Sequence record: NC_020077.1
Length of the DNA: 64,000 nucleotides
Strand: one strand, 5' to 3'
Made by a program: the position numbers and the translations under genes
Shown: piece by piece, positions 1 through 8,492 of the stretch
How the letters are laid out: each line of letters begins with the position of its first letter
How positions within the stretch are numbered: the first letter of the stretch is position 1
Notes under the pieces: generated by a model
Told to the model about the DNA's origin: nothing
Database searches by the model: none
Seen by the model: the letters and a program-made list of their open reading frames with translations, nothing else

Positions 1-1130
1 CTACCTTTTTCTTAGTCCTGCTATCCTCTTACGTTATACCACCCCTTTTTACGTAAATTTTACGTTTTCCCCTTATTTTGTATTAATAAAGTTTTTGGAA
101 AAATATTTCAAAGACAAATTTTATTTCAATTTTGATCAAAATTCGAATTGACGTGCCGACATTTTCATTTTTTTATACTTCTTCTTTTAAAATTTGGATT
201 AAAAGGAAAAACCTAACGTTAATTTAGGTAAATTTAGAGAAATTGTATTATTAATATTTCACTGAATTTAATTCTCGATTTCATGAGTGATTTCATAAAG
301 TATCTAATATACGATATTATTTCTATTCCTAATAAAAGTTTTTATGATATCAACTTTATATATTCATTTTGAATTTATATATTATCAATACGCTTTTCCT
401 ATTTTTTTATCAATACCTATAGTTTTTTGAATTCAAATAATAAAATTTTTGTGACATATAGTTATTTTCATAAATAATGATATATAGTTATTATTGAAAA
501 TAAGAATATCAATTATAAAAAGTTTTCATGATAATTATTATATCTATTTGATTTTGTAATTAATGATGATATCATTATTTCTAAAAATAGTTGATATAAT
601 AATTTTTATATTTAATTTTTTAAGTGAATAAGTTATAAAATTGTTTTCAAAAATTTTTACATTTTGTTTTTATAGTAATTATTATATCTAGTTTTTATTA
701 TAAATATATATAATTATGATATTATAATTTTTATAATAATTATTTTTTATTGTAAATATGATAATCATGAAATTAACTGATTTGAAAATATATCTCATTT
801 ATAATAAAAAATTCAAATTATATAATTTGAGTGAAATTGAAATTAAAATATGTATAAATGATAAAATTGAATTTTTATAATATCGATATTAAATTTTTTA
901 TCTTAACTTATATGAAAAAGTTTATATCAACTTAAATATGAAAATTCAATTTTCATATTTCAGATTATCAATATAGTTTCAATTTCACATATATTAAATA
1001 AATTCAAAGGTATAAATGTTATCAGATAAGTTTATACTTTTGTATTTATGTTTAATCATATCATTATCATGATATAAATAGTTTATAATATCACTTATTT
1101 TATAATGATAAATAAAAACTCGAAATTCCT
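1..1130. other. Very AT-rich non-coding region, candidate replication origin
   Basis: No ORF in the track; long A/T runs; perfect 16-bp palindrome AATTTTGATCAAAATT at 128-143; precedes about 35 kb of co-oriented plus-strand genes. Origin role is inference. Confidence 0.4.
1063..1121 (+). repeat. 59-bp upstream repeat, copy 1
   Basis: ATTATCATGATATAAATAGTTTATAATATCACTTATTTTATAATGATAAATAAAAACTC; recurs at 2388, 3450 and 4430. Confidence 0.9.
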
Positions 1131-1184
1131 ATCCCTTATTTACTTTCAAGTTAATCTAATGATCTATTGACTTAATCACGTAAA

Positions 1185-1208
1185 TTTCACGATGATAATA
1201 CCGTAAAT
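1185..1208 (+). promoter_or_regulatory. Class I operator palindrome, copy 1 (consensus TTTTACGG-N8-CCGTAAAA)
   Basis: TTTCACGA-TGATAATA-CCGTAAAT; TATA box TTTAAATA at 1222, 13 nt downstream. Confidence 0.8.
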
Positions 1209-1263
1209 GATTAGAAAAAGATTTAAATATCCCTTTTCATAAAAGATATATTAGGAGTAAAAT

Positions 1264-1749
1264 ATGGCCGCACCCGAATTAGAAAACCCCGCCCAGAATA
1301 ATGCGGGGGAAAATTCGAATGAAGTAAATCTTGAAGAAATAATAAAAATAATATACGAAATGCGTAAAATCAGGGAGACGCTAGAACAATTAAAGCAAGA
1401 AGATCTTAATAGCGTTAAAAAACTAATTGTAAAAATTGATAATCAAGTAAAAAAATTAAAACAATTAATTGATGAGCGTGATGATTTACCAGTCATGAAA
1501 ATGGATATTAGCAGTTTAGCTAATTTAACGCAAACTTTAGTTAATAAAATTGTTAATCAAGAAATTAAAATAGAAACTTTATTTTTATTAATTACAGATT
1601 TAGTAAAATTAGTAACTGAAATAAAAACTAAACTAGAAATTAAATACAATATCGATATGAGCGCGGAAGAGATATACAAACTAGCAAGAGATATAGCATA
1701 CGACGTGGATGATTTTATATATTTCTTATATTCTTATTTAAATAATTAA
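1264..1749 (+). CDS. Hypothetical coiled-coil protein with shared N-terminal leader
   Basis: 161 aa; GGAG RBS; heptad-like L/I/K/E pattern; leader MAAPELENPAQNNAG. Confidence 0.75.
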   Translation: MAAPELENPAQNNAGENSNEVNLEEIIKIIYEMRKIRETLEQLKQEDLNSVKKLIVKIDNQVKKLKQLIDERDDLPVMKMDISSLANLTQTLVNKIVNQEIKIETLFLLITDLVKLVTEIKTKLEIKYNIDMSAEEIYKLARDIAYDVDDFIYFLYSYLNN

Positions 1750-1750
1750 A

Positions 1751-1803
1751 CTTTTTTTTTATTTTTGTTTTATACTTTTTCTAAACTTTTTATTATGTTA
1801 TTT
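1751..1803 (+). terminator. T-rich terminator-like repeat, also at about 2984-3041
   Basis: TTTTATTTTTGTTTTATACTTTTTCTAAACTTTTTATT follows both ORF1264 and ORF2589. Confidence 0.6.
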
Positions 1804-1825
1804 TAATTTTATTATGTTATTATAA

Positions 1826-2300
1826 TGTAATGCCGCCCGGCCATTATATCATTATTATATATTGTAATTTTGCCGCAGGCCCATCGCCGCATTTTACATT
1901 ATTATTATATTATACGGGCCCGCCGCCCCGCCATTATTCATTATATAATATTATAATTGCCGCCCCCGCCGCCTATAATTCATTATAATAATATATAATA
2001 ATGAATATGCCGCCGCCTAATCATTATTATAATGTAATGCTGGCCCGCCGCATTTAACATATATTATAATATAATAATGAATATGCCGCAGGCCGGCCCA
2101 TTATTCATTATTATATTATAATTGCCGCAGGCCTTTATCATTATTATAATAATGCCGCCGCCGGCCTGCCGCCGCATTAATCATTATATTATAATAATAA
2201 AATGTATAACTAATATTCATTATTATATATTATATATTGAATATGCCGCCGCGCCTATGCCGCAGGCCCGCCGCCGCCCTAATTACATTATTATAATATA
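1826..2300 (+). repeat. AT/GC mosaic satellite, block 1
   Basis: About 10 GC-rich islands (GCCGC, GCCGCAGGCC) separated by nearly pure A/T spacers such as CATTATTATAAT. Confidence 0.85.
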
Positions 2301-2387
2301 ATGAATAACTAATCTACAATATTCATTATATCAATTATAAAATTACATATATACACTTAATTCTTTTACTTATACTTTTTGTATAAT

Positions 2388-2446
2388 ATTATCATGATAT
2401 AAATAGTTTATAATATCACTTATTCTATAATGATAAATAAAAACTC
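2388..2446 (+). repeat. 59-bp upstream repeat, copy 2
   Basis: One mismatch to copy 1. Confidence 0.9.
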
Positions 2447-2509
2447 AAATCTAGTATTGATTTGAATTCCCTTAATTCTTTTAATTTACGCTATTGATAA
2501 TCACGTAAA

Positions 2510-2533
2510 CTTTACGGTGATAATACCGTTAAT
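2510..2533 (+). promoter_or_regulatory. Class I operator, copy 2
   Basis: CTTTACGG-TGATAATA-CCGTTAAT; TTTAAATA at 2547. Confidence 0.85.
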
Positions 2534-2588
2534 CATTAACAAAAGCTTTAAATACCCCTTTTCATAAATAGGTATTTAGGGGTAAAAA

Positions 2589-2981
2589 ATGGCCGCACAA
2601 CCCTTAACTCAAATCCCCGCGTCAAATGCGGGGGTAAAAGTTGATGAATTTTTTGATGAAAAAGAATTAATTAAAATCGCGAGCAGATTAGGGCCTGTAC
2701 AGAAAAAAGTACTAAAAGCACTAGCGCAGAGCGGCGGGAAAATGATGATGCAACATGACTTTAGGACCTGGGGGCAAAAAACTATAGCAGGCATCGTGGG
2801 CGGCGTAAATGCGGAATACCGCGCCTTAAACACGAGAAAACTATGCGAAGCGCTGGAGAGGAAGGGGCTAGTGACAATAACGATTGAAAAATGCCCTAAC
2901 CACCCTAAATATAATAAAAAATTTGTATATTTAACACCAAAAGGATATAAAATAGTAGAAATAATTTCTCAAAACGAATAA
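2589..2981 (+). CDS. Winged helix-turn-helix (MarR-like) protein with shared leader
   Basis: LGPVQKKVLKAL ... LCEALERKGLV ... FVYLTPKG pattern is typical of wHTH proteins. Confidence 0.7.
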   Translation: MAAQPLTQIPASNAGVKVDEFFDEKELIKIASRLGPVQKKVLKALAQSGGKMMMQHDFRTWGQKTIAGIVGGVNAEYRALNTRKLCEALERKGLVTITIEKCPNHPKYNKKFVYLTPKGYKIVEIISQNE

Positions 2982-3044
2982 AGTTTTTTTTTTAATTTTA
3001 TTTTTGTTTTATACTTTTTCTAAACTTTTTATTTTGTTATTATA

Positions 3045-3330
3045 CTTATGCCGCCGGCCGCCTTTATCATTATTATATTATAATATAATGATAATGGCCG
3101 CGCCCCCGCCGCCGGCCTGCCGCCGCACTTTACATTATATATAATATGCCGCCGGCCTTTATCATTATTATTTATTATATATAATGTATAACTAATATTC
3201 ATCATTATTATAATATGCCGCAGGCCCGCCGCCGCCCTAATTACATTATTATAATAATATATGCCGCAGGCCGGCATTTAATTATTATAATATATGCCGC
3301 GCCTATGCCGCCATCGCCGCACTTAACATT
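3045..3330 (+). repeat. AT/GC mosaic satellite, block 2
   Basis: Shares blocks with block 1, e.g. ATGCCGCAGGCCCGCCGCCGCCCTAATTACATTATTATAAT and AATGTATAACTAATATTCAT. Confidence 0.85.
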
Positions 3331-3449
3331 ATTATAATGAATATAATAATTAATAATTAATATACATTATATATTATATTTTATAAATATGATAAATACG
3401 CGTTTTACCCCCTAATACTTATACTTTTGTAAATTACTTTATGCATATC

Positions 3450-3508
3450 ATTATCATGATATAAATAGTTTATAACTACATTTATTCTATAATGATAAAT
3501 AAAAACTC
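3450..3508 (+). repeat. 59-bp upstream repeat, copy 3
   Basis: About 4 mismatches to copy 2. Confidence 0.9.
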
Positions 3509-3581
3509 AAATCTAGTATTGATTTGAATTCCCTTAACTATTTCAATTCACTCTATTGATTCATTTCCTTAACTACGTAAA

Positions 3582-3605
3582 TTTTACGGTAATAATGCCG
3601 TAAAA
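3582..3605 (+). promoter_or_regulatory. Class I operator, copy 3 (perfect arms)
   Basis: TTTTACGG-TAATAATG-CCGTAAAA; TTTAAATA at 3619. Confidence 0.9.
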
Positions 3606-3662
3606 GTTAAACAAAAGATTTAAATACCTCTTTTTACTAAAATTATACTTGAGGGTTAAGAA

Positions 3663-4103
3663 ATGGCCGCACCCCTTAACCCAACCCCCGCGGCAAATGC
3701 GGGGGATAAAATTGAAAAAATAAAACAAATCGCAAAAATAATATATCCATATATATATACTAGCGATAATGAATTTAGCGAAACGGATGCAGAAGATTTA
3801 GAAAGAGAGTTACAATATTTACCAAAAATTATAAACTTATTGGAATGGGCATTAAAGAATGTAAATAAGGTCGAAATAAGCGCAAGTGATGAGTTAAAGT
3901 TTTACGATAAAAAAACGGGCTATGCATTGTATATAACGTTAGCTAAAGGGCGCGGAGCGCAAACGGAAGTAGTAGTTTACCCTGACGCAAATACGATATA
4001 CGTTTTAGTATTTAAAGCGCCCGTATTGAAAATATTGAAAAGGGCTAAAAAGGCACTAGAGGATGCGCTAAAAAGATATACAAAAGCGCAACAAATCTTA
4101 TAA
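3663..4103 (+). CDS. Hypothetical protein with shared leader
   Basis: 146 aa; GAGGG RBS; leader MAAPLNPTPAANAG. Confidence 0.75.
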   Translation: MAAPLNPTPAANAGDKIEKIKQIAKIIYPYIYTSDNEFSETDAEDLERELQYLPKIINLLEWALKNVNKVEISASDELKFYDKKTGYALYITLAKGRGAQTEVVVYPDANTIYVLVFKAPVLKILKRAKKALEDALKRYTKAQQIL

Positions 4104-4124
4104 GATATAACATTTTTTTATTTA

Positions 4125-4350
4125 ATATATGCCGCAGGCCGCGGCATAAACAAACAAATAGTTATAAAAATACCGCCGCTTGCGGCCCGGCGGCGGGCGG
4201 GTTAACAAAAACAAATAATTGATAAACAAATACCGCCCGCCGGCTTATTCTTTTATTTATTAGTTATATAATATTATTATCCCATTTTTTAATGCGCTTT
4301 TATCCCCCATTTTTTATATACTTTAATTATGAATATGCCGCAGGCCGCCC
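4125..4350 (+). repeat. AT/GC mosaic satellite, block 3 (degenerate)
   Basis: AATATGCCGCAGGCC twice; GC hairpin CCGCCG-N9-CGGCGG. Confidence 0.7.
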
Positions 4351-4429
4351 TTTACATTGTATAATATAATGAATAATGCGCTTAATCCCCCGTTTTACTT
4401 ATACTTTTGTATTTAAATTTAAGTATAAC

Positions 4430-4488
4430 GTTATACTGATATAATCACTTTATAACTACATTTATTTTATAATGATTAATAAAAACTC
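4430..4488 (+). repeat. 59-bp upstream repeat, copy 4 (degenerate)
   Basis: 3' half TTTATAACTACATTTATTTTATAATGATTAATAAAAACTC is conserved. Confidence 0.8.
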
Positions 4489-4550
4489 AAAACTACTATT
4501 GGCCAAATCGCCCTTAACTATTTCAATTAGTATATTGATAATCACGTAAA

Positions 4551-4574
4551 TTTCACGGGGATAATGCCGTAAAA
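4551..4574 (+). promoter_or_regulatory. Class I operator, copy 4
   Basis: TTTCACGG-GGATAATG-CCGTAAAA; TTTAAATA at 4588. Confidence 0.85.
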
Positions 4575-4628
4575 AAGGACAGAAAGCTTTAAATACTTCT
4601 TTTAACAAAAGTATATTTGTGGGTAAAA

Positions 4629-5564
4629 ATGTCACAACCCCTAAACCAAACCCCTGCCCAAATGGAGGGGGAAATTAAAAAACAACACATAAAAATATAC
4701 GAGTTTACAAAACAATTGAAAGGGCTAGTAATTGAAAGAGTAAAGTCAAAGCTAGGAGTTATTATTAATGATAATACAGAAGAAATTAATGAATTAATAG
4801 ATATTAATACTGAAGAACTAACGGACACTATAACTAAGTACATAGTACTATTACAAGATCACGTGGAGGATTACGAGACCTGGAGATGGGTTGAGCCAGT
4901 GGATCACCTATTATATTTATCTCAAATGAAGGCAAAACTTGAAGTAAATACTATATTAAGCAAAAATGAAACGAGAAAGGTAAGGCAGAAATTAGCTAAA
5001 TTAGAAGAAAAGATATATAAAACTATAGGCTTAATATATGCCGTAATTTGTAGTGAGAAAAGCGGCAGATTAAATATAATACAGGAGATAATTAATAATA
5101 ACGTAGAGACACGTTTTAACAACGTTATTAGCGATATTGACGCGTTATTAACCAAGCTAGAAAATGTAAATATAAGTGATGAAGCTACAAAAATGCTTAT
5201 TAATAATATAATTAGCACAGCTAAGCAACTTAAAGAAGAAGTAGTAAAGTTAAGAAGTGAAGGAGTAAAAATAGCAAGTATTAACGAAATAGTACTATTT
5301 ATAAAGAAGCTTAACGAATTATTAGCACAAAGCGCATTAATTTCTACTCTAGCTAATTTGATTTACGTAAAAGATAAACAGGTATATGAGCAGTTATTTG
5401 GGCAGCGAAGTTTACTGAATTCGGCGGACAATGCTTATCACTCTTTATTTAAAGTTTTAAAAGATATTAGTAGCAGTTATATTGAAGGATATGAACATAT
5501 AAAGCAAGCTTGCGCAGATAAAACATACGCAGAATATTACACAACAGTATGCAGTGATGAATGA
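4629..5564 (+). CDS. Hypothetical all-alpha protein with shared leader (start moved to ATG 4629)
   Basis: GTGGGT RBS before the ATG; leader MSQPLNQTPAQMEG. Confidence 0.8.
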   Translation: MSQPLNQTPAQMEGEIKKQHIKIYEFTKQLKGLVIERVKSKLGVIINDNTEEINELIDINTEELTDTITKYIVLLQDHVEDYETWRWVEPVDHLLYLSQMKAKLEVNTILSKNETRKVRQKLAKLEEKIYKTIGLIYAVICSEKSGRLNIIQEIINNNVETRFNNVISDIDALLTKLENVNISDEATKMLINNIISTAKQLKEEVVKLRSEGVKIASINEIVLFIKKLNELLAQSALISTLANLIYVKDKQVYEQLFGQRSLLNSADNAYHSLFKVLKDISSSYIEGYEHIKQACADKTYAEYYTTVCSDE

Positions 5565-5923
5565 TGAAAGAAATGAAAAAAGAAGTAAAACTACTTAAAA
5601 AATTAGATAAACAAGCATTTAAGATAGTACTATTATTATATAAAGCAGAGCCTGGTAATCAAAAGCGGCGTGAACTATTGTCGCACTATTATAACGCGCA
5701 TTTAGCTGTAATGCATAGTGACGAGCTTATTTGTAAAAAAATATACGATAACTTATTTATTTACAGCGTTCTGGGGAACGTTATAAAAGCGTTAGAAGGG
5801 GCACTATACTATGCTAACGATATACAAAATTATCATGCGGAGATATTAGCAAAAATTCTAAAGGAAATGTTAGACATTTTACAAAAAATACAAACAATAA
5901 AACTAGAGATTATCGCGGAATAA
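5561..5923 (+). CDS. Hypothetical helical protein
   Basis: 120 aa; ATGA overlap with the upstream stop suggests translational coupling. Confidence 0.7.
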   Translation: MMKEMKKEVKLLKKLDKQAFKIVLLLYKAEPGNQKRRELLSHYYNAHLAVMHSDELICKKIYDNLFIYSVLGNVIKALEGALYYANDIQNYHAEILAKILKEMLDILQKIQTIKLEIIAE

Positions 5924-6058
5924 CGCGTTACTTTAGTAGCAGATTTTTACATGCTTATTTTTTACATTCTTATGCTTTTTGATACGAAATTATTTATAAT
6001 CTATTAATATAATACTGACCTTAATTTAGACAGGGGATTTCTGCCCTTAACGCCCTTA

Positions 6059-6082
6059 TTTTACGGCTATATTACCGTAAAA
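6059..6082 (+). promoter_or_regulatory. Class I operator, copy 5 (perfect arms)
   Basis: TTTTACGG-CTATATTA-CCGTAAAA; TTTAAATA at 6096. Confidence 0.9.
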
Positions 6083-6143
6083 ATCGAGAGAAAGCTTTAA
6101 ATATCTCTTTTACTAATATATAATTAGGGGGTGAAAATCAAAA

Positions 6144-6689
6144 ATGATCGAACCTTTACGTGAATTATTTAAACATTTTAAGGAAGAAAGTGAAAAAATA
6201 AGGGAAGAGTTGGCAAGGGAGAGCGAAGAAGTTAACGTACTGATGAAAACTGATGATGAAAAAATTAAAGAAAAAATAACAGAATTATACAATACAATTG
6301 TTACGCAGGACGCATTACAGCCTGGCTTAACTAAGCTGTATGATACAATAATTGATTATGCGAGGCAACTTGACGATAAAAAGGCGTCATTTATACTTAA
6401 CGCGTTTCACAATAAAATTTACATTACGAAAGCAGATATACAAGAAACGCTAAAGGAAATGTATAATGTCGTTAATGGCAAAACGAAAAAGAAGGATAGC
6501 AAAAACGAGTTATTAATGTTGACTATTAACTTGTTTAAACATTATGCGGCGATGAAATCGCTAACGTTAATTTTATGCGACATTAAAGACTTACGCGAGA
6601 GTGAAGCCTGCAGAATTAACGCGGAGAGTAATAATAAGCTAAAGGATAATATACAGTATTTGCTAGATTTATTGCTGCACAAAAGTTAA
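6144..6689 (+). CDS. Helical protein, paralog of ORF6710
   Basis: IKEKITELYN ... TLKEMYNVVNGK ... LTINLFKHY aligns with ORF6710. Confidence 0.8.
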   Translation: MIEPLRELFKHFKEESEKIREELARESEEVNVLMKTDDEKIKEKITELYNTIVTQDALQPGLTKLYDTIIDYARQLDDKKASFILNAFHNKIYITKADIQETLKEMYNVVNGKTKKKDSKNELLMLTINLFKHYAAMKSLTLILCDIKDLRESEACRINAESNNKLKDNIQYLLDLLLHKS

Positions 6690-6709
6690 ATTTAATTAGG
6701 TGGGTCAAA

Positions 6710-7267
6710 ATGTCTGATCCCATAAATCAAATGATTGAATATCTTGAGCAGGAAATAAGAGGAATGCAAGAGAGGCGAAAACAAGAAGAGAAAGAAGAAC
6801 GTAAAAGAATAAGGCAAGAGAGGCAGGAAGAAATTAAAGAAAAAATAACGAAATTGTATAATATAATTGTAAAAGAAGATTTACTAGGAGTCAATTTAAA
6901 TAAGCTGTATAATGTAGTTGAAGACTACGCTAAAGAGATTGATAGTGAGACGGCAAGTAAAGCGTTTATGAATCTGATAGCGGCGATGGAAACTGCGCGA
7001 GAGAATATGCAAAAAACGCTAAAGGAAATGTATGATATTGCGAATGGTAAAAAGAAGAATAGCAAAAATAAACTATTAGTACTAACTATTAACTTGTTTA
7101 AGCAGTATGGCATAATAAGGGCATTATATGATTCCCTGGACCGTTTTAGCAAAATACGCAAAAGTGAGGTTTATAATGATACGGGAGATAAAAGCCTGAG
7201 GACGTTGTTACATATCACACTAAATAGTAGTTTAAAGTTCTTGCTAGAGTTACTAATCGAAAGGTAA
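6710..7267 (+). CDS. Helical protein, paralog of ORF6144
   Basis: IKEKITKLYN ... TLKEMYDIANGK ... LTINLFKQY; GGTGG RBS. Confidence 0.8.
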   Translation: MSDPINQMIEYLEQEIRGMQERRKQEEKEERKRIRQERQEEIKEKITKLYNIIVKEDLLGVNLNKLYNVVEDYAKEIDSETASKAFMNLIAAMETARENMQKTLKEMYDIANGKKKNSKNKLLVLTINLFKQYGIIRALYDSLDRFSKIRKSEVYNDTGDKSLRTLLHITLNSSLKFLLELLIER

Positions 7268-7461
7268 GGAGGTGAGAGAATGGAAGGGGGTTTCAGTCAC
7301 AAATATGTTAACACCTGCTTATGAGGCATTAATTGTGGACTCGGCCCCTTACTTTATGCTTTTTTGGTTCGGTTTCTATATTATGGTTATGTAATTATTC
7401 TTAACTTATTTCCATAATATCTGACGATTTTTAGGAAATGGTTTGTCTTTTTATGACCTTA

Positions 7462-7485
7462 TTTTACGGGGATACTACCGTGAAA
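7462..7485 (+). promoter_or_regulatory. Class I operator, copy 6
   Basis: TTTTACGG-GGATACTA-CCGTGAAA; TTTAAATA at 7499. Confidence 0.85.
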
Positions 7486-7538
7486 AAGGACAGAAAACTT
7501 TAAATACATCTTTTACTAATATTTAATTGTGGGTAAAA

Positions 7539-8492
7539 ATGTCACAACCCCTAAACCAAACCCCCGCTCCACAAGATGCGGGGGATAAATTGGATGAATT
7601 AAAAGAAAAAATAAAAGAATATATAGAAGATTTGGAAGATCTATCACATGAGTACGACCTACCCGATTTCGCTGCTGATGACTTGCGCGCAGAGCTAGAA
7701 TACATAAGTAAAGAAGCAAATAACGCAGATCTGGCAAAAAGCGTTAAAGAAGTAGTAGAATTAATGGCAAATGCGCTAGATGAGCAAGTAGAGAAAGCGC
7801 TAGAGAATGGCAAGGCATTACGGAACTCTTATGATAATAACAAAATTAGCGATATGTTTAAGAGCGCAGTAAAAATTTACGCAAACTTAAAAACAATAAA
7901 TACAATAGTAGAATATCTAAAGCAATATGTTAAGGTATTAGGCATTACGGAGGCAAATTTAGAAAGGTTTACACAAGAGGCTGGAAGCATTATAGCTATA
8001 CTAGCAAATCACATAGCGCAACATGTTAAACTTAGCGAAGACGATGCAAGAGATTTAGAAAACGACCTGATATATTACCACGATCTAGCAGAAAACTGGA
8101 CTGATATTGAGGATGCTCTTGAGGAAATTGAGTATGATTTAGAAAACGACACAGAGTTTAAGCGTGGAACGTATAAGGCCTTGATGAAGGTTTTGAATGC
8201 AATGCGGGAGCACCATGATAAAGGAGTAGGTTATGGGAACGGCGCGGATGAAATAGTATATGACGCATACGATTCGGACGAAGATGAATATAAGCCTGAC
8301 GAAATAGACACGGAAACACTATTACTAAACCTGGCGGAAACTTACGCACACTTTATAGCACTACAAGCACTTTACGACAACATAATGAGCGAGTATATAA
8401 GTAATGAAAAATTAGAAGATGCAACGAAAAAAGCAATAAATAGGGCAAAAGATGCACAAGAAATCATTTTAAGCAGCTATAATAGCAACTAA
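7539..8492 (+). CDS. Acidic helical protein, paralog family with 8718 and 12468 (start moved to ATG 7539)
   Basis: Leader MSQPLNQTPAPQDAG; motifs AVKIYANL and LAETYAHFIALQALYD. Confidence 0.85.
   Translation: MSQPLNQTPAPQDAGDKLDELKEKIKEYIEDLEDLSHEYDLPDFAADDLRAELEYISKEANNADLAKSVKEVVELMANALDEQVEKALENGKALRNSYDNNKISDMFKSAVKIYANLKTINTIVEYLKQYVKVLGITEANLERFTQEAGSIIAILANHIAQHVKLSEDDARDLENDLIYYHDLAENWTDIEDALEEIEYDLENDTEFKRGTYKALMKVLNAMREHHDKGVGYGNGADEIVYDAYDSDEDEYKPDEIDTETLLLNLAETYAHFIALQALYDNIMSEYISNEKLEDATKKAINRAKDAQEIILSSYNSN

Follow-up and report, generated by a model that had tools for sequence, protein, structure and literature searches.

The 64,000-nucleotide stretch analysed here (record NC_020077.1; hereafter the window) corresponds to bases 1-64000 of the genome of Sulfolobus virus STSV2 (76,107 bp), its first 8 kb being 100% identical to bases 1-8000 of JQ287645.1. 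At its left end, where the STSV2 record annotates solely hypothetical proteins, three non-coding blocks (1826-2300, 3045-3330 and 4125-4350; together 987 bp, 1.3% of the genome) follow three successive early-gene cassettes, and in them short GC-rich islands alternate with TA-rich spacers. We favour, with a probability of about 45%, the reading that these blocks are a compound minisatellite, specific to the STSV clade and locked in one orientation, which is kept by slippage and unequal recombination and acts as DNA if it acts at all.

That the three blocks are strand-biased mosaics of GC and AT had been claimed in the initial annotation of the window, and word counts agreed with it. Of 62 GCCGC copies in the genome, 39 lie inside the blocks (39.5 per kb, against 0.31 per kb elsewhere), where about 0.3 are expected from the blocks' own base composition; the reverse complement, GCGGC, is present there 3 times. 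All 14 genome copies of ATGCCGC and all 8 of GCAGGCC are inside the blocks as well. GGCC, which had been described as frequent, reaches 18 per kb compared to 1.6 per kb outside, an 11-fold enrichment.

By segmentation, block 1 holds ten islands, block 2 six and block 3 four to five. Their lengths range over 9-35 bp, and the spacers between them are mostly 20-35 bp, with 93% A+T. From one island start to the next, the median distance is 44 bp and the commonest 40-44 bp, but the period is loose (30-55 bp, with outliers to 104). At 1885-1999, Tandem Repeats Finder reported a 42-bp period with 2.8 copies and 79% matches. Sixteen of the 20 STSV2 islands start with GCCGC placed right after T or AT. 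Beyond this head, the island consists of interrupted GCC repeats, (GCC)n, at a C:G ratio near 1.7:1. The word CATTAT is found 5-9 nt past the island end in most units, where it heads the TA-rich spacer, and since it is much more frequent than its complement ATAATG (18 against 7), the spacer word is oriented, not palindromic. The only constant parts of the unit are the 6-7-nt head (TGCCGC) and CATTAT. Spacers are depleted in A and T runs: in STSV2, AAA was observed 2 times for 30 expected and TTT 11 times for 50, and in STSV1, AAA was observed once for 39 expected and TTTT never for 15. TA steps are enriched (120 for 95 expected). Spacers were also considered as true palindromes, an idea that was dropped, as the best perfect stem (5.14, versus 4.54 in shuffles) was only about 1.8 standard deviations above the control.

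This recurring pattern of GCCGC islands between A/T spacers stands for blocks 1 and 2, called arrays 1 and 2 below. The initial annotation had extended it to the third block, and there it fails for positions 4125-4262 (block 3a), which form hairpins and have A-rich spacers. The reshuffling of sub-blocks between arrays, also proposed there, was found: a 43-bp block is 100% identical between arrays 1 and 2 (2256-2298 and 3214-3256), and 2167-2235 matches 3147-3216 at 85%.

Absence from relatives had been set beforehand as an outcome that would speak against the blocks being a feature at all. On the contrary, arrays recur in all five STSV-type genomes examined, which are STSV1 to STSV4 and contig JAVZKH010000037.1 of a metagenome-assembled genome, about 80% identical overall. 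They are always placed at early-gene cassette junctions, beside the predicted replication origin, which we take to be the STSV1 counterpart of STSV2 bases 1-1000, and on one side of it only. In STSV1, arrays occupy seven junctions between 990 and 8365, and the rest of its 75 kb is free of them; this virus has 30 forward and 4 reverse pairs of TGCCGC at a distance of 15-60 nt. Orientation is kept in every genome, with TGCCGC forward to reverse ratios of 19:1 (STSV2), 40:9, 16:0 and 11:0. One array is in fact already known, as the first array of STSV1 (999-1120) is annotated in the record, without comment, as a repeat_region. Its 3′ end and the 3′ end of STSV2 array 1 are orthologous and 86% identical.

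Not one TGCCGC pair was found in ATSV, SMV3, SMV4 or ATV. BLAST against other phage and plasmid records gave nothing similar, and the matches of array 1 to plasmids were AT-rich Borrelia sequences, attributable to chance. A 14-mer island word retrieved from IMG/VR single chance matches and STSV1 only, and a cassette-promoter pattern retrieved 10 chance loci, and no relatives, from JGI metagenomes. With a two-island pattern, at least 120 chance loci were obtained in prokaryote genome contigs, none of them array-like among the matches listed, a result that says nothing about host genomes. Finally, exact-protein look-up of STSV2_01 and STSV2_02 returned the GenBank record only and no transcript contigs.

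We then compared the arrays among the genomes that carry them. Arrays of STSV1 and STSV2 match unit by unit only, and are not colinear. Orthologous arrays of STSV3, STSV4 and the metagenomic contig have in common, or identical, the terminator module, the downstream module and the last island of 31 nt, and their interiors differ by insertions of 19 and 73 nt, that is, by whole-unit insertions or deletions. Within one genome, be it STSV2 or the contig, arrays share identical or near-identical blocks. For the junction that follows ORF3 (open reading frame 3) of STSV2, the alignment with the STSV3 counterpart was too divergent for insertion boundaries to be placed. Each genome also has several cassette junctions that lack an array, and some of these hold apparent decayed units, such as atatGCCtgct or CGCC followed by CATTAT (about 3230-3260 and 6560-6600 in one STSV-type relative, about 1040-1060 in JAVZKH010000037.1), and their appearance suggests array death as well as birth. 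The longest STSV1 array, at about 3190-3405, includes one inverted segment, with a GCGGC cluster and the 4 reverse TGCCGC pairs.

Judged from the alignments, such turnover is what would be expected of a satellite subject to slippage, unequal exchange and gene conversion. We propose that one ancestral unit of about 42 bp, composed of a TGCCGC-headed (GCC)n-like island and a CATTAT-headed (ATT/ATA)n-like spacer, would have been copied head-to-tail in the gaps between early-gene cassettes near the predicted origin. These gaps would be untranscribed, and would tolerate insertions. Growth, shrinkage and homogenisation of the arrays could then take three routes: triplet slippage within islands and spacers, slippage or unequal crossing-over of whole units, and gene conversion between arrays. 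Head-to-tail copying would account for the strand bias, the (GCC)n core for the 2:1 excess of C over G and for the GC skew that is locally reversed at 1-5 kb, and triplet-repeat spacers of the (ATT/ATA)n type for the missing A and T runs. We infer both this mechanism and the absence of a sequence-specific function. The arrays would act as DNA, and not through RNA or protein, any benefit being generic, for instance as a spacer or boundary between autonomous cassettes.

Several properties of known minisatellites and compound microsatellites are found here. Units of the usual ~10-100 bp are arranged head-to-tail in one orientation (period of 42, TGCCGC at 19:1), copy number varies by whole units (the 19 and 73 nt insertions), blocks are homogenised within a genome (the 100% identical one), triplet tracts vary in length, and arrays are present or absent among close relatives. 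The arrayless and decayed junctions, the inverted segment tolerated in STSV1 and the loose spacing support the same reading. The STSV arrays differ from usual minisatellites in being carried by a compact archaeal virus genome, where they are confined to cassette junctions beside a predicted origin, and in that each unit joins pure G/C to pure A/T with conserved junction words. The statement that no known feature class explains the blocks was therefore too strong, given that a compound minisatellite under concerted evolution has this anatomy and this turnover, and that the STSV1 copy is a repeat_region in its record.

Four observations weigh against a minisatellite devoid of specific function. 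One grammar, one orientation and one compartment persist in five genomes that are ~80% identical, and compact viruses are not expected to keep 1-2 kb of junk, which argues for more than neutrality. The TGCCGC head and CATTAT are better conserved than the rest of the unit, as would be the case for a binding site. A 15-mer, CCGCGCCTATGCCGC, is common to all four named viruses (STSV1-4). Last, the arrays hold 134 of the 300 least stable 20-mers of the genome (45%) and 165 of the 300 most stable ones (55%), an extreme contrast that could be under selection in its own right at 75-80°C.

The layout of the region is as follows.

1-1030, no strand: AT-rich non-coding region with 17% GC (0.169 over bases 1-1000), the counterpart of the predicted STSV1 origin by GC content and homology.
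1264-1749, plus strand: STSV2_01, ORF of the first early-gene cassette, with the common MAAP leader (record annotation and ORF list).
1750-1825, plus strand: terminator module that follows ORF1; its four T runs, each of at least 5, are at 1752, 1762, 1776 and 1787.
1826-2300, plus strand: array 1, in which TA-rich spacers separate ten C-rich GC islands (1832-2279).
2589-2981, plus strand: STSV2_02, cassette ORF (record annotation and ORF list).
2984-3044, plus strand: terminator module after ORF2, with four T runs.
3045-3330, plus strand: array 2, six islands (3050-3320), with the unit grammar and orientation of array 1.
3663-4103, plus strand: STSV2_03, cassette ORF, a predicted anti-defence gene (PMC11065993).
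4125-4262, no strand: block 3a, a set of GC-rich inverted repeats that fold, as DNA, into three hairpins whose loops are A-rich.
4337-4377, plus strand: lone canonical unit, an island of the GCCGCAGGCC type followed by a CATTGT spacer; 4317-4370 matches 2065-2122 at 83%.

The next gene, STSV2_04, is annotated in the record at 4629-5564. Each early gene is an autonomous cassette, with a conserved upstream module, a TTTAAATA box, a common N-terminal leader and a terminator module containing several T runs. The terminator module of ORF1 is 94% identical to 2989-3041. STSV1 and STSV2 are among the viruses with a conserved early-promoter motif in a published screen, in which STSV2_03, STSV2_04 and STSV2_06 are predicted anti-defence genes (PMC11065993). 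No Pfam match was found for STSV2_01. In STSV1, the region homologous to the AT-rich left end has annotated repeat regions and stem-loops at 561-1120.

The main rival, unlikely but to be taken seriously and already among the initial hypotheses, is that the arrays load a protein in the manner of iterons, the TGCCGC/CATTAT units being putative sites for a viral or host DNA-binding protein involved in replication initiation or control, partition or packaging. A candidate is STSV2_69 (71623-72654, minus strand), an AAA+ protein named DnaA-like replication initiation protein in RefSeq, with homologues in ATSV, SMV3/4, ATV and SSV6. Its gene is ~4 kb away on the other side of the predicted origin region in the circular genome. 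As with the replication iterons of plasmids and viruses, direct repeats in many copies and one orientation start at the edge of a predicted origin, and an initiator-like gene is close by. It also speaks for iterons that the arrays lie on only one side of the origin, that the junction words are conserved across five genomes, and that the depositors of STSV1 entered the first array as a repeat_region alongside the other repeats and the stem-loops of the origin. However, iterons are near-identical repeats of fixed length (~17-22 bp) with regular spacing, whereas the STSV repeats, with their variable islands and periods, have neither a fixed length nor a fixed spacing, and are spread over 3-8 kb in several intergenic arrays. 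In STSV1 the first array abuts the AT-rich predicted origin, and most arrays are 2-8 kb off, between genes. Copy number is not conserved, arrays are missing at many junctions, and they are absent in other large spindle-shaped viruses having the same DnaA-like gene. The origin itself is only a prediction.

A bolder version, to which we give rather less credit, makes of the arrays an orientation-specific protein-loading field, in which TA-rich stretches would be held by GC clamps as bubbles pre-melted at 75-80°C. The TGCCGC/CATTAT junctions would be read by a viral factor for the start of replication, for packaging or for site-specific modification. The DnaA-like AAA+ protein and a DpdA-type enzyme are candidates for this factor. 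A purely physical or topological element is improbable to about the same degree, or slightly more so. Here TA-rich stretches, melted or close to melting at 75-80°C, would lie between GC clamps, and the clamped bubbles could widen an unwinding zone, take up supercoils between cassettes under strong transcription, or keep melting from spreading in the AT-rich early region. The concentration of both extremes of stability in 1.3% of the genome is consistent with it, as are the enriched TA steps, the near absence of rigid A-tracts, and the position of the arrays between tandem early promoters, adjoining a region of 17% GC. The difficulty is that slippage of (GCC)n and (ATT/ATA)n yields the same composition automatically, and that arrayless junctions apparently function.

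Still less probable is a role of the arrays as recombination substrates promoting exchange, gain and loss of whole cassettes. They do sit exactly at cassette boundaries, blocks are common to several arrays, cassette content varies among strains, and the ORF1 cassette of STSV2 is inserted at the left edge of array 1 relative to STSV1. They also resemble integron attC sites in being non-coding elements of variable length and asymmetric strands placed at the 3′ end of a cassette. But an attC site consists of one imperfect palindrome, which IntI recombines, whereas STSV arrays are made of direct repeats, their cassettes have their own promoters, and no recombinase linked to the arrays is known. 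Moreover, the ~300-bp conserved promoter modules and the 60-bp terminator modules already offer better homology, and cassettes without arrays vary too.

There is little to recommend a hot spot of modification or a restriction decoy, in which the islands would concentrate the targets of viral cytosine methylases or of a DpdA-type deazaguanine enzyme, or soak up GC-specific nucleases of the host. STSV DNA is modified: 149 carboxy-deazaguanines per million nucleotides were measured in STSV2 (PMC10516641), cytosine modification was reported for STSV1, and a speculative homologue of an N4-methylcytosine (4mC) methylase was noted (PMC11208441). By our own arithmetic the STSV2 value amounts to roughly 10-23 carboxy-deazaguanines per genome, which is of the order of the island count, a match at the level of coincidence that rests only on published bulk data. 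The enrichment of GGCC in the arrays points in the same direction. A decoy, which had been among the initial hypotheses, supposes that the array words are avoided elsewhere, and this was not observed. Outside the arrays, GGCC was counted 122 times for 113 expected, CCGG 34 for 33, GCCGGC 3 for 3.5 and GCCGC 23 for 23.5. No avoidance of array-rich palindromes was detected elsewhere in STSV1 or STSV2. In the rest of the genome, GGCC, CCGG, GCCGGC and the other such palindromes have observed to expected ratios of 0.85-1.08, and occurrence at the expected rate gives no sign of restriction pressure on them.

We consider it just as improbable that the arrays are transcribed into a non-coding RNA, which had also been suggested initially, or into a functional extension of a 3′ untranslated region (UTR). 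In four RNA-seq runs of 2015 from STSV2-infected Sulfolobus islandicus, 40-48% of the words sampled from 1200-4700 are present, which means that part of the region is expressed; this share is that estimated for mRNA alone (ORFs and short UTRs, ~0.44) and not the ~0.7 estimated with the arrays added, a weak argument since contigs can drop repeats. A structured RNA would have its own promoter, or fold beyond controls or with conserved pairs, and none of this was seen. In blocks 1 and 2, neither strand has a TTTAWATA-type box, runs of five T or A are missing, and the upstream gene's four T runs come directly before each block. Compared with shuffles that preserve the mosaic, folding at 75°C is worse for the plus strand of array 1 (z-score +2.5), and no excess folding was found for array 2 or for the minus strand of array 1 (z-scores for blocks 1 and 2 ranging from −0.1 to +2.5). 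The best Rfam match of the arrays had an E value of 0.36, and arrays cannot be aligned between viruses. ORFs of 52-82 amino acids run across the arrays, and these cannot be conserved since arrays are not colinear between viruses; coding peptides were rejected because unit lengths show no preference for multiples of three. Taken together, the lack of TATA-like box, T-run, excess folding, conserved ORF and significant Rfam match in blocks 1 and 2, and of any array-rich restriction site that is avoided elsewhere, leaves the RNA and restriction-decoy readings unsupported.

Two other systems deserve a comparison with the minisatellite reading. In yeast mitochondria, GC clusters, some of which are in ori/rep elements, form short GC-only islands in near-pure AT DNA, are prone to recombination and vary between strains. 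The STSV islands have the same aspect, GC-only within nearly pure AT spacers. Yeast clusters are palindromic hairpins found in either orientation, whereas STSV islands are strand-biased and avoid self-complementarity, only block 3a forming hairpins, and the two are evolutionarily unrelated. CRISPR arrays also alternate two kinds of short segments with a period of tens of bases. But CRISPR repeats are near-identical and constant in length, with unique spacers of similar length, whereas in STSV both kinds of segment vary in length and sequence, the spacers are low-complexity AT stretches akin to one another and not captured DNA, and there is neither leader nor cas context.

Block 3a, directly after STSV2_03, is an element distinct from the oriented arrays 1 and 2. 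It folds into three GC hairpins (DNA fold of −31.8 kcal/mol, z-score −3.46), a separate fold test giving a z-score of about −2.2 for both strands. A and T runs are not depleted in its A-rich spacers. One island of block 3 is G-rich, and only the last (4337-4350) belongs to a canonical unit. Block 3a could be a terminator or a protein-binding palindrome.

We found no description of the junction arrays, of their oriented unit or of their clade restriction in the literature searched, the STSV1 and STSV2 genome papers being outside that search. To our knowledge, no experiment has mapped a replication origin, a packaging signal or any cis-regulatory DNA in the large spindle-shaped archaeal viruses. 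The arrays are the most conspicuous non-coding signal beside the predicted STSV origin, among predicted early anti-defence genes. If functional, they would give a concrete handle on replication or packaging at 80°C. If neutral, they would mean that even compact genomes of hyperthermophile viruses carry rapidly evolving satellites, which may serve as strain markers and call for caution in the assembly of the region. In both cases the arrays account for the GC skew being locally reversed at 1-5 kb. Cumulative GC skew drops over this interval and then climbs to about 28 kb, and because the early drop is caused by the C-rich arrays, the minimum near 4-5 kb should not be read as an origin.

A few further observations were made on the islands, the cassettes and the relatives. 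A G-quadruplex as the unifying feature of the islands was discarded, a two-tetrad motif (minus strand) being present in only about half of them, and inspection by eye gave no convincing match to the aCcr1-box of a cell-cycle regulator. The contig JAVZKH010000037.1 (8055 bp) is binned as Candidatus Aenigmatarchaeota. It is an STSV-type fragment with the same cassettes and arrays and a homologue of STSV2_04 at 87% identity, and was therefore probably mis-binned. At the start of the cassette ORFs (1264-1310, 2589-2635, 3663-3706 and 4629-4675), the conserved N-terminal leader reads MAAP... or MSQPLNQTPA.... Its DNA holds a short GC inverted repeat, CCCCGC...GCGGGG, and the ORF start, ATGGCCGCAC, resembles the head of the array islands.

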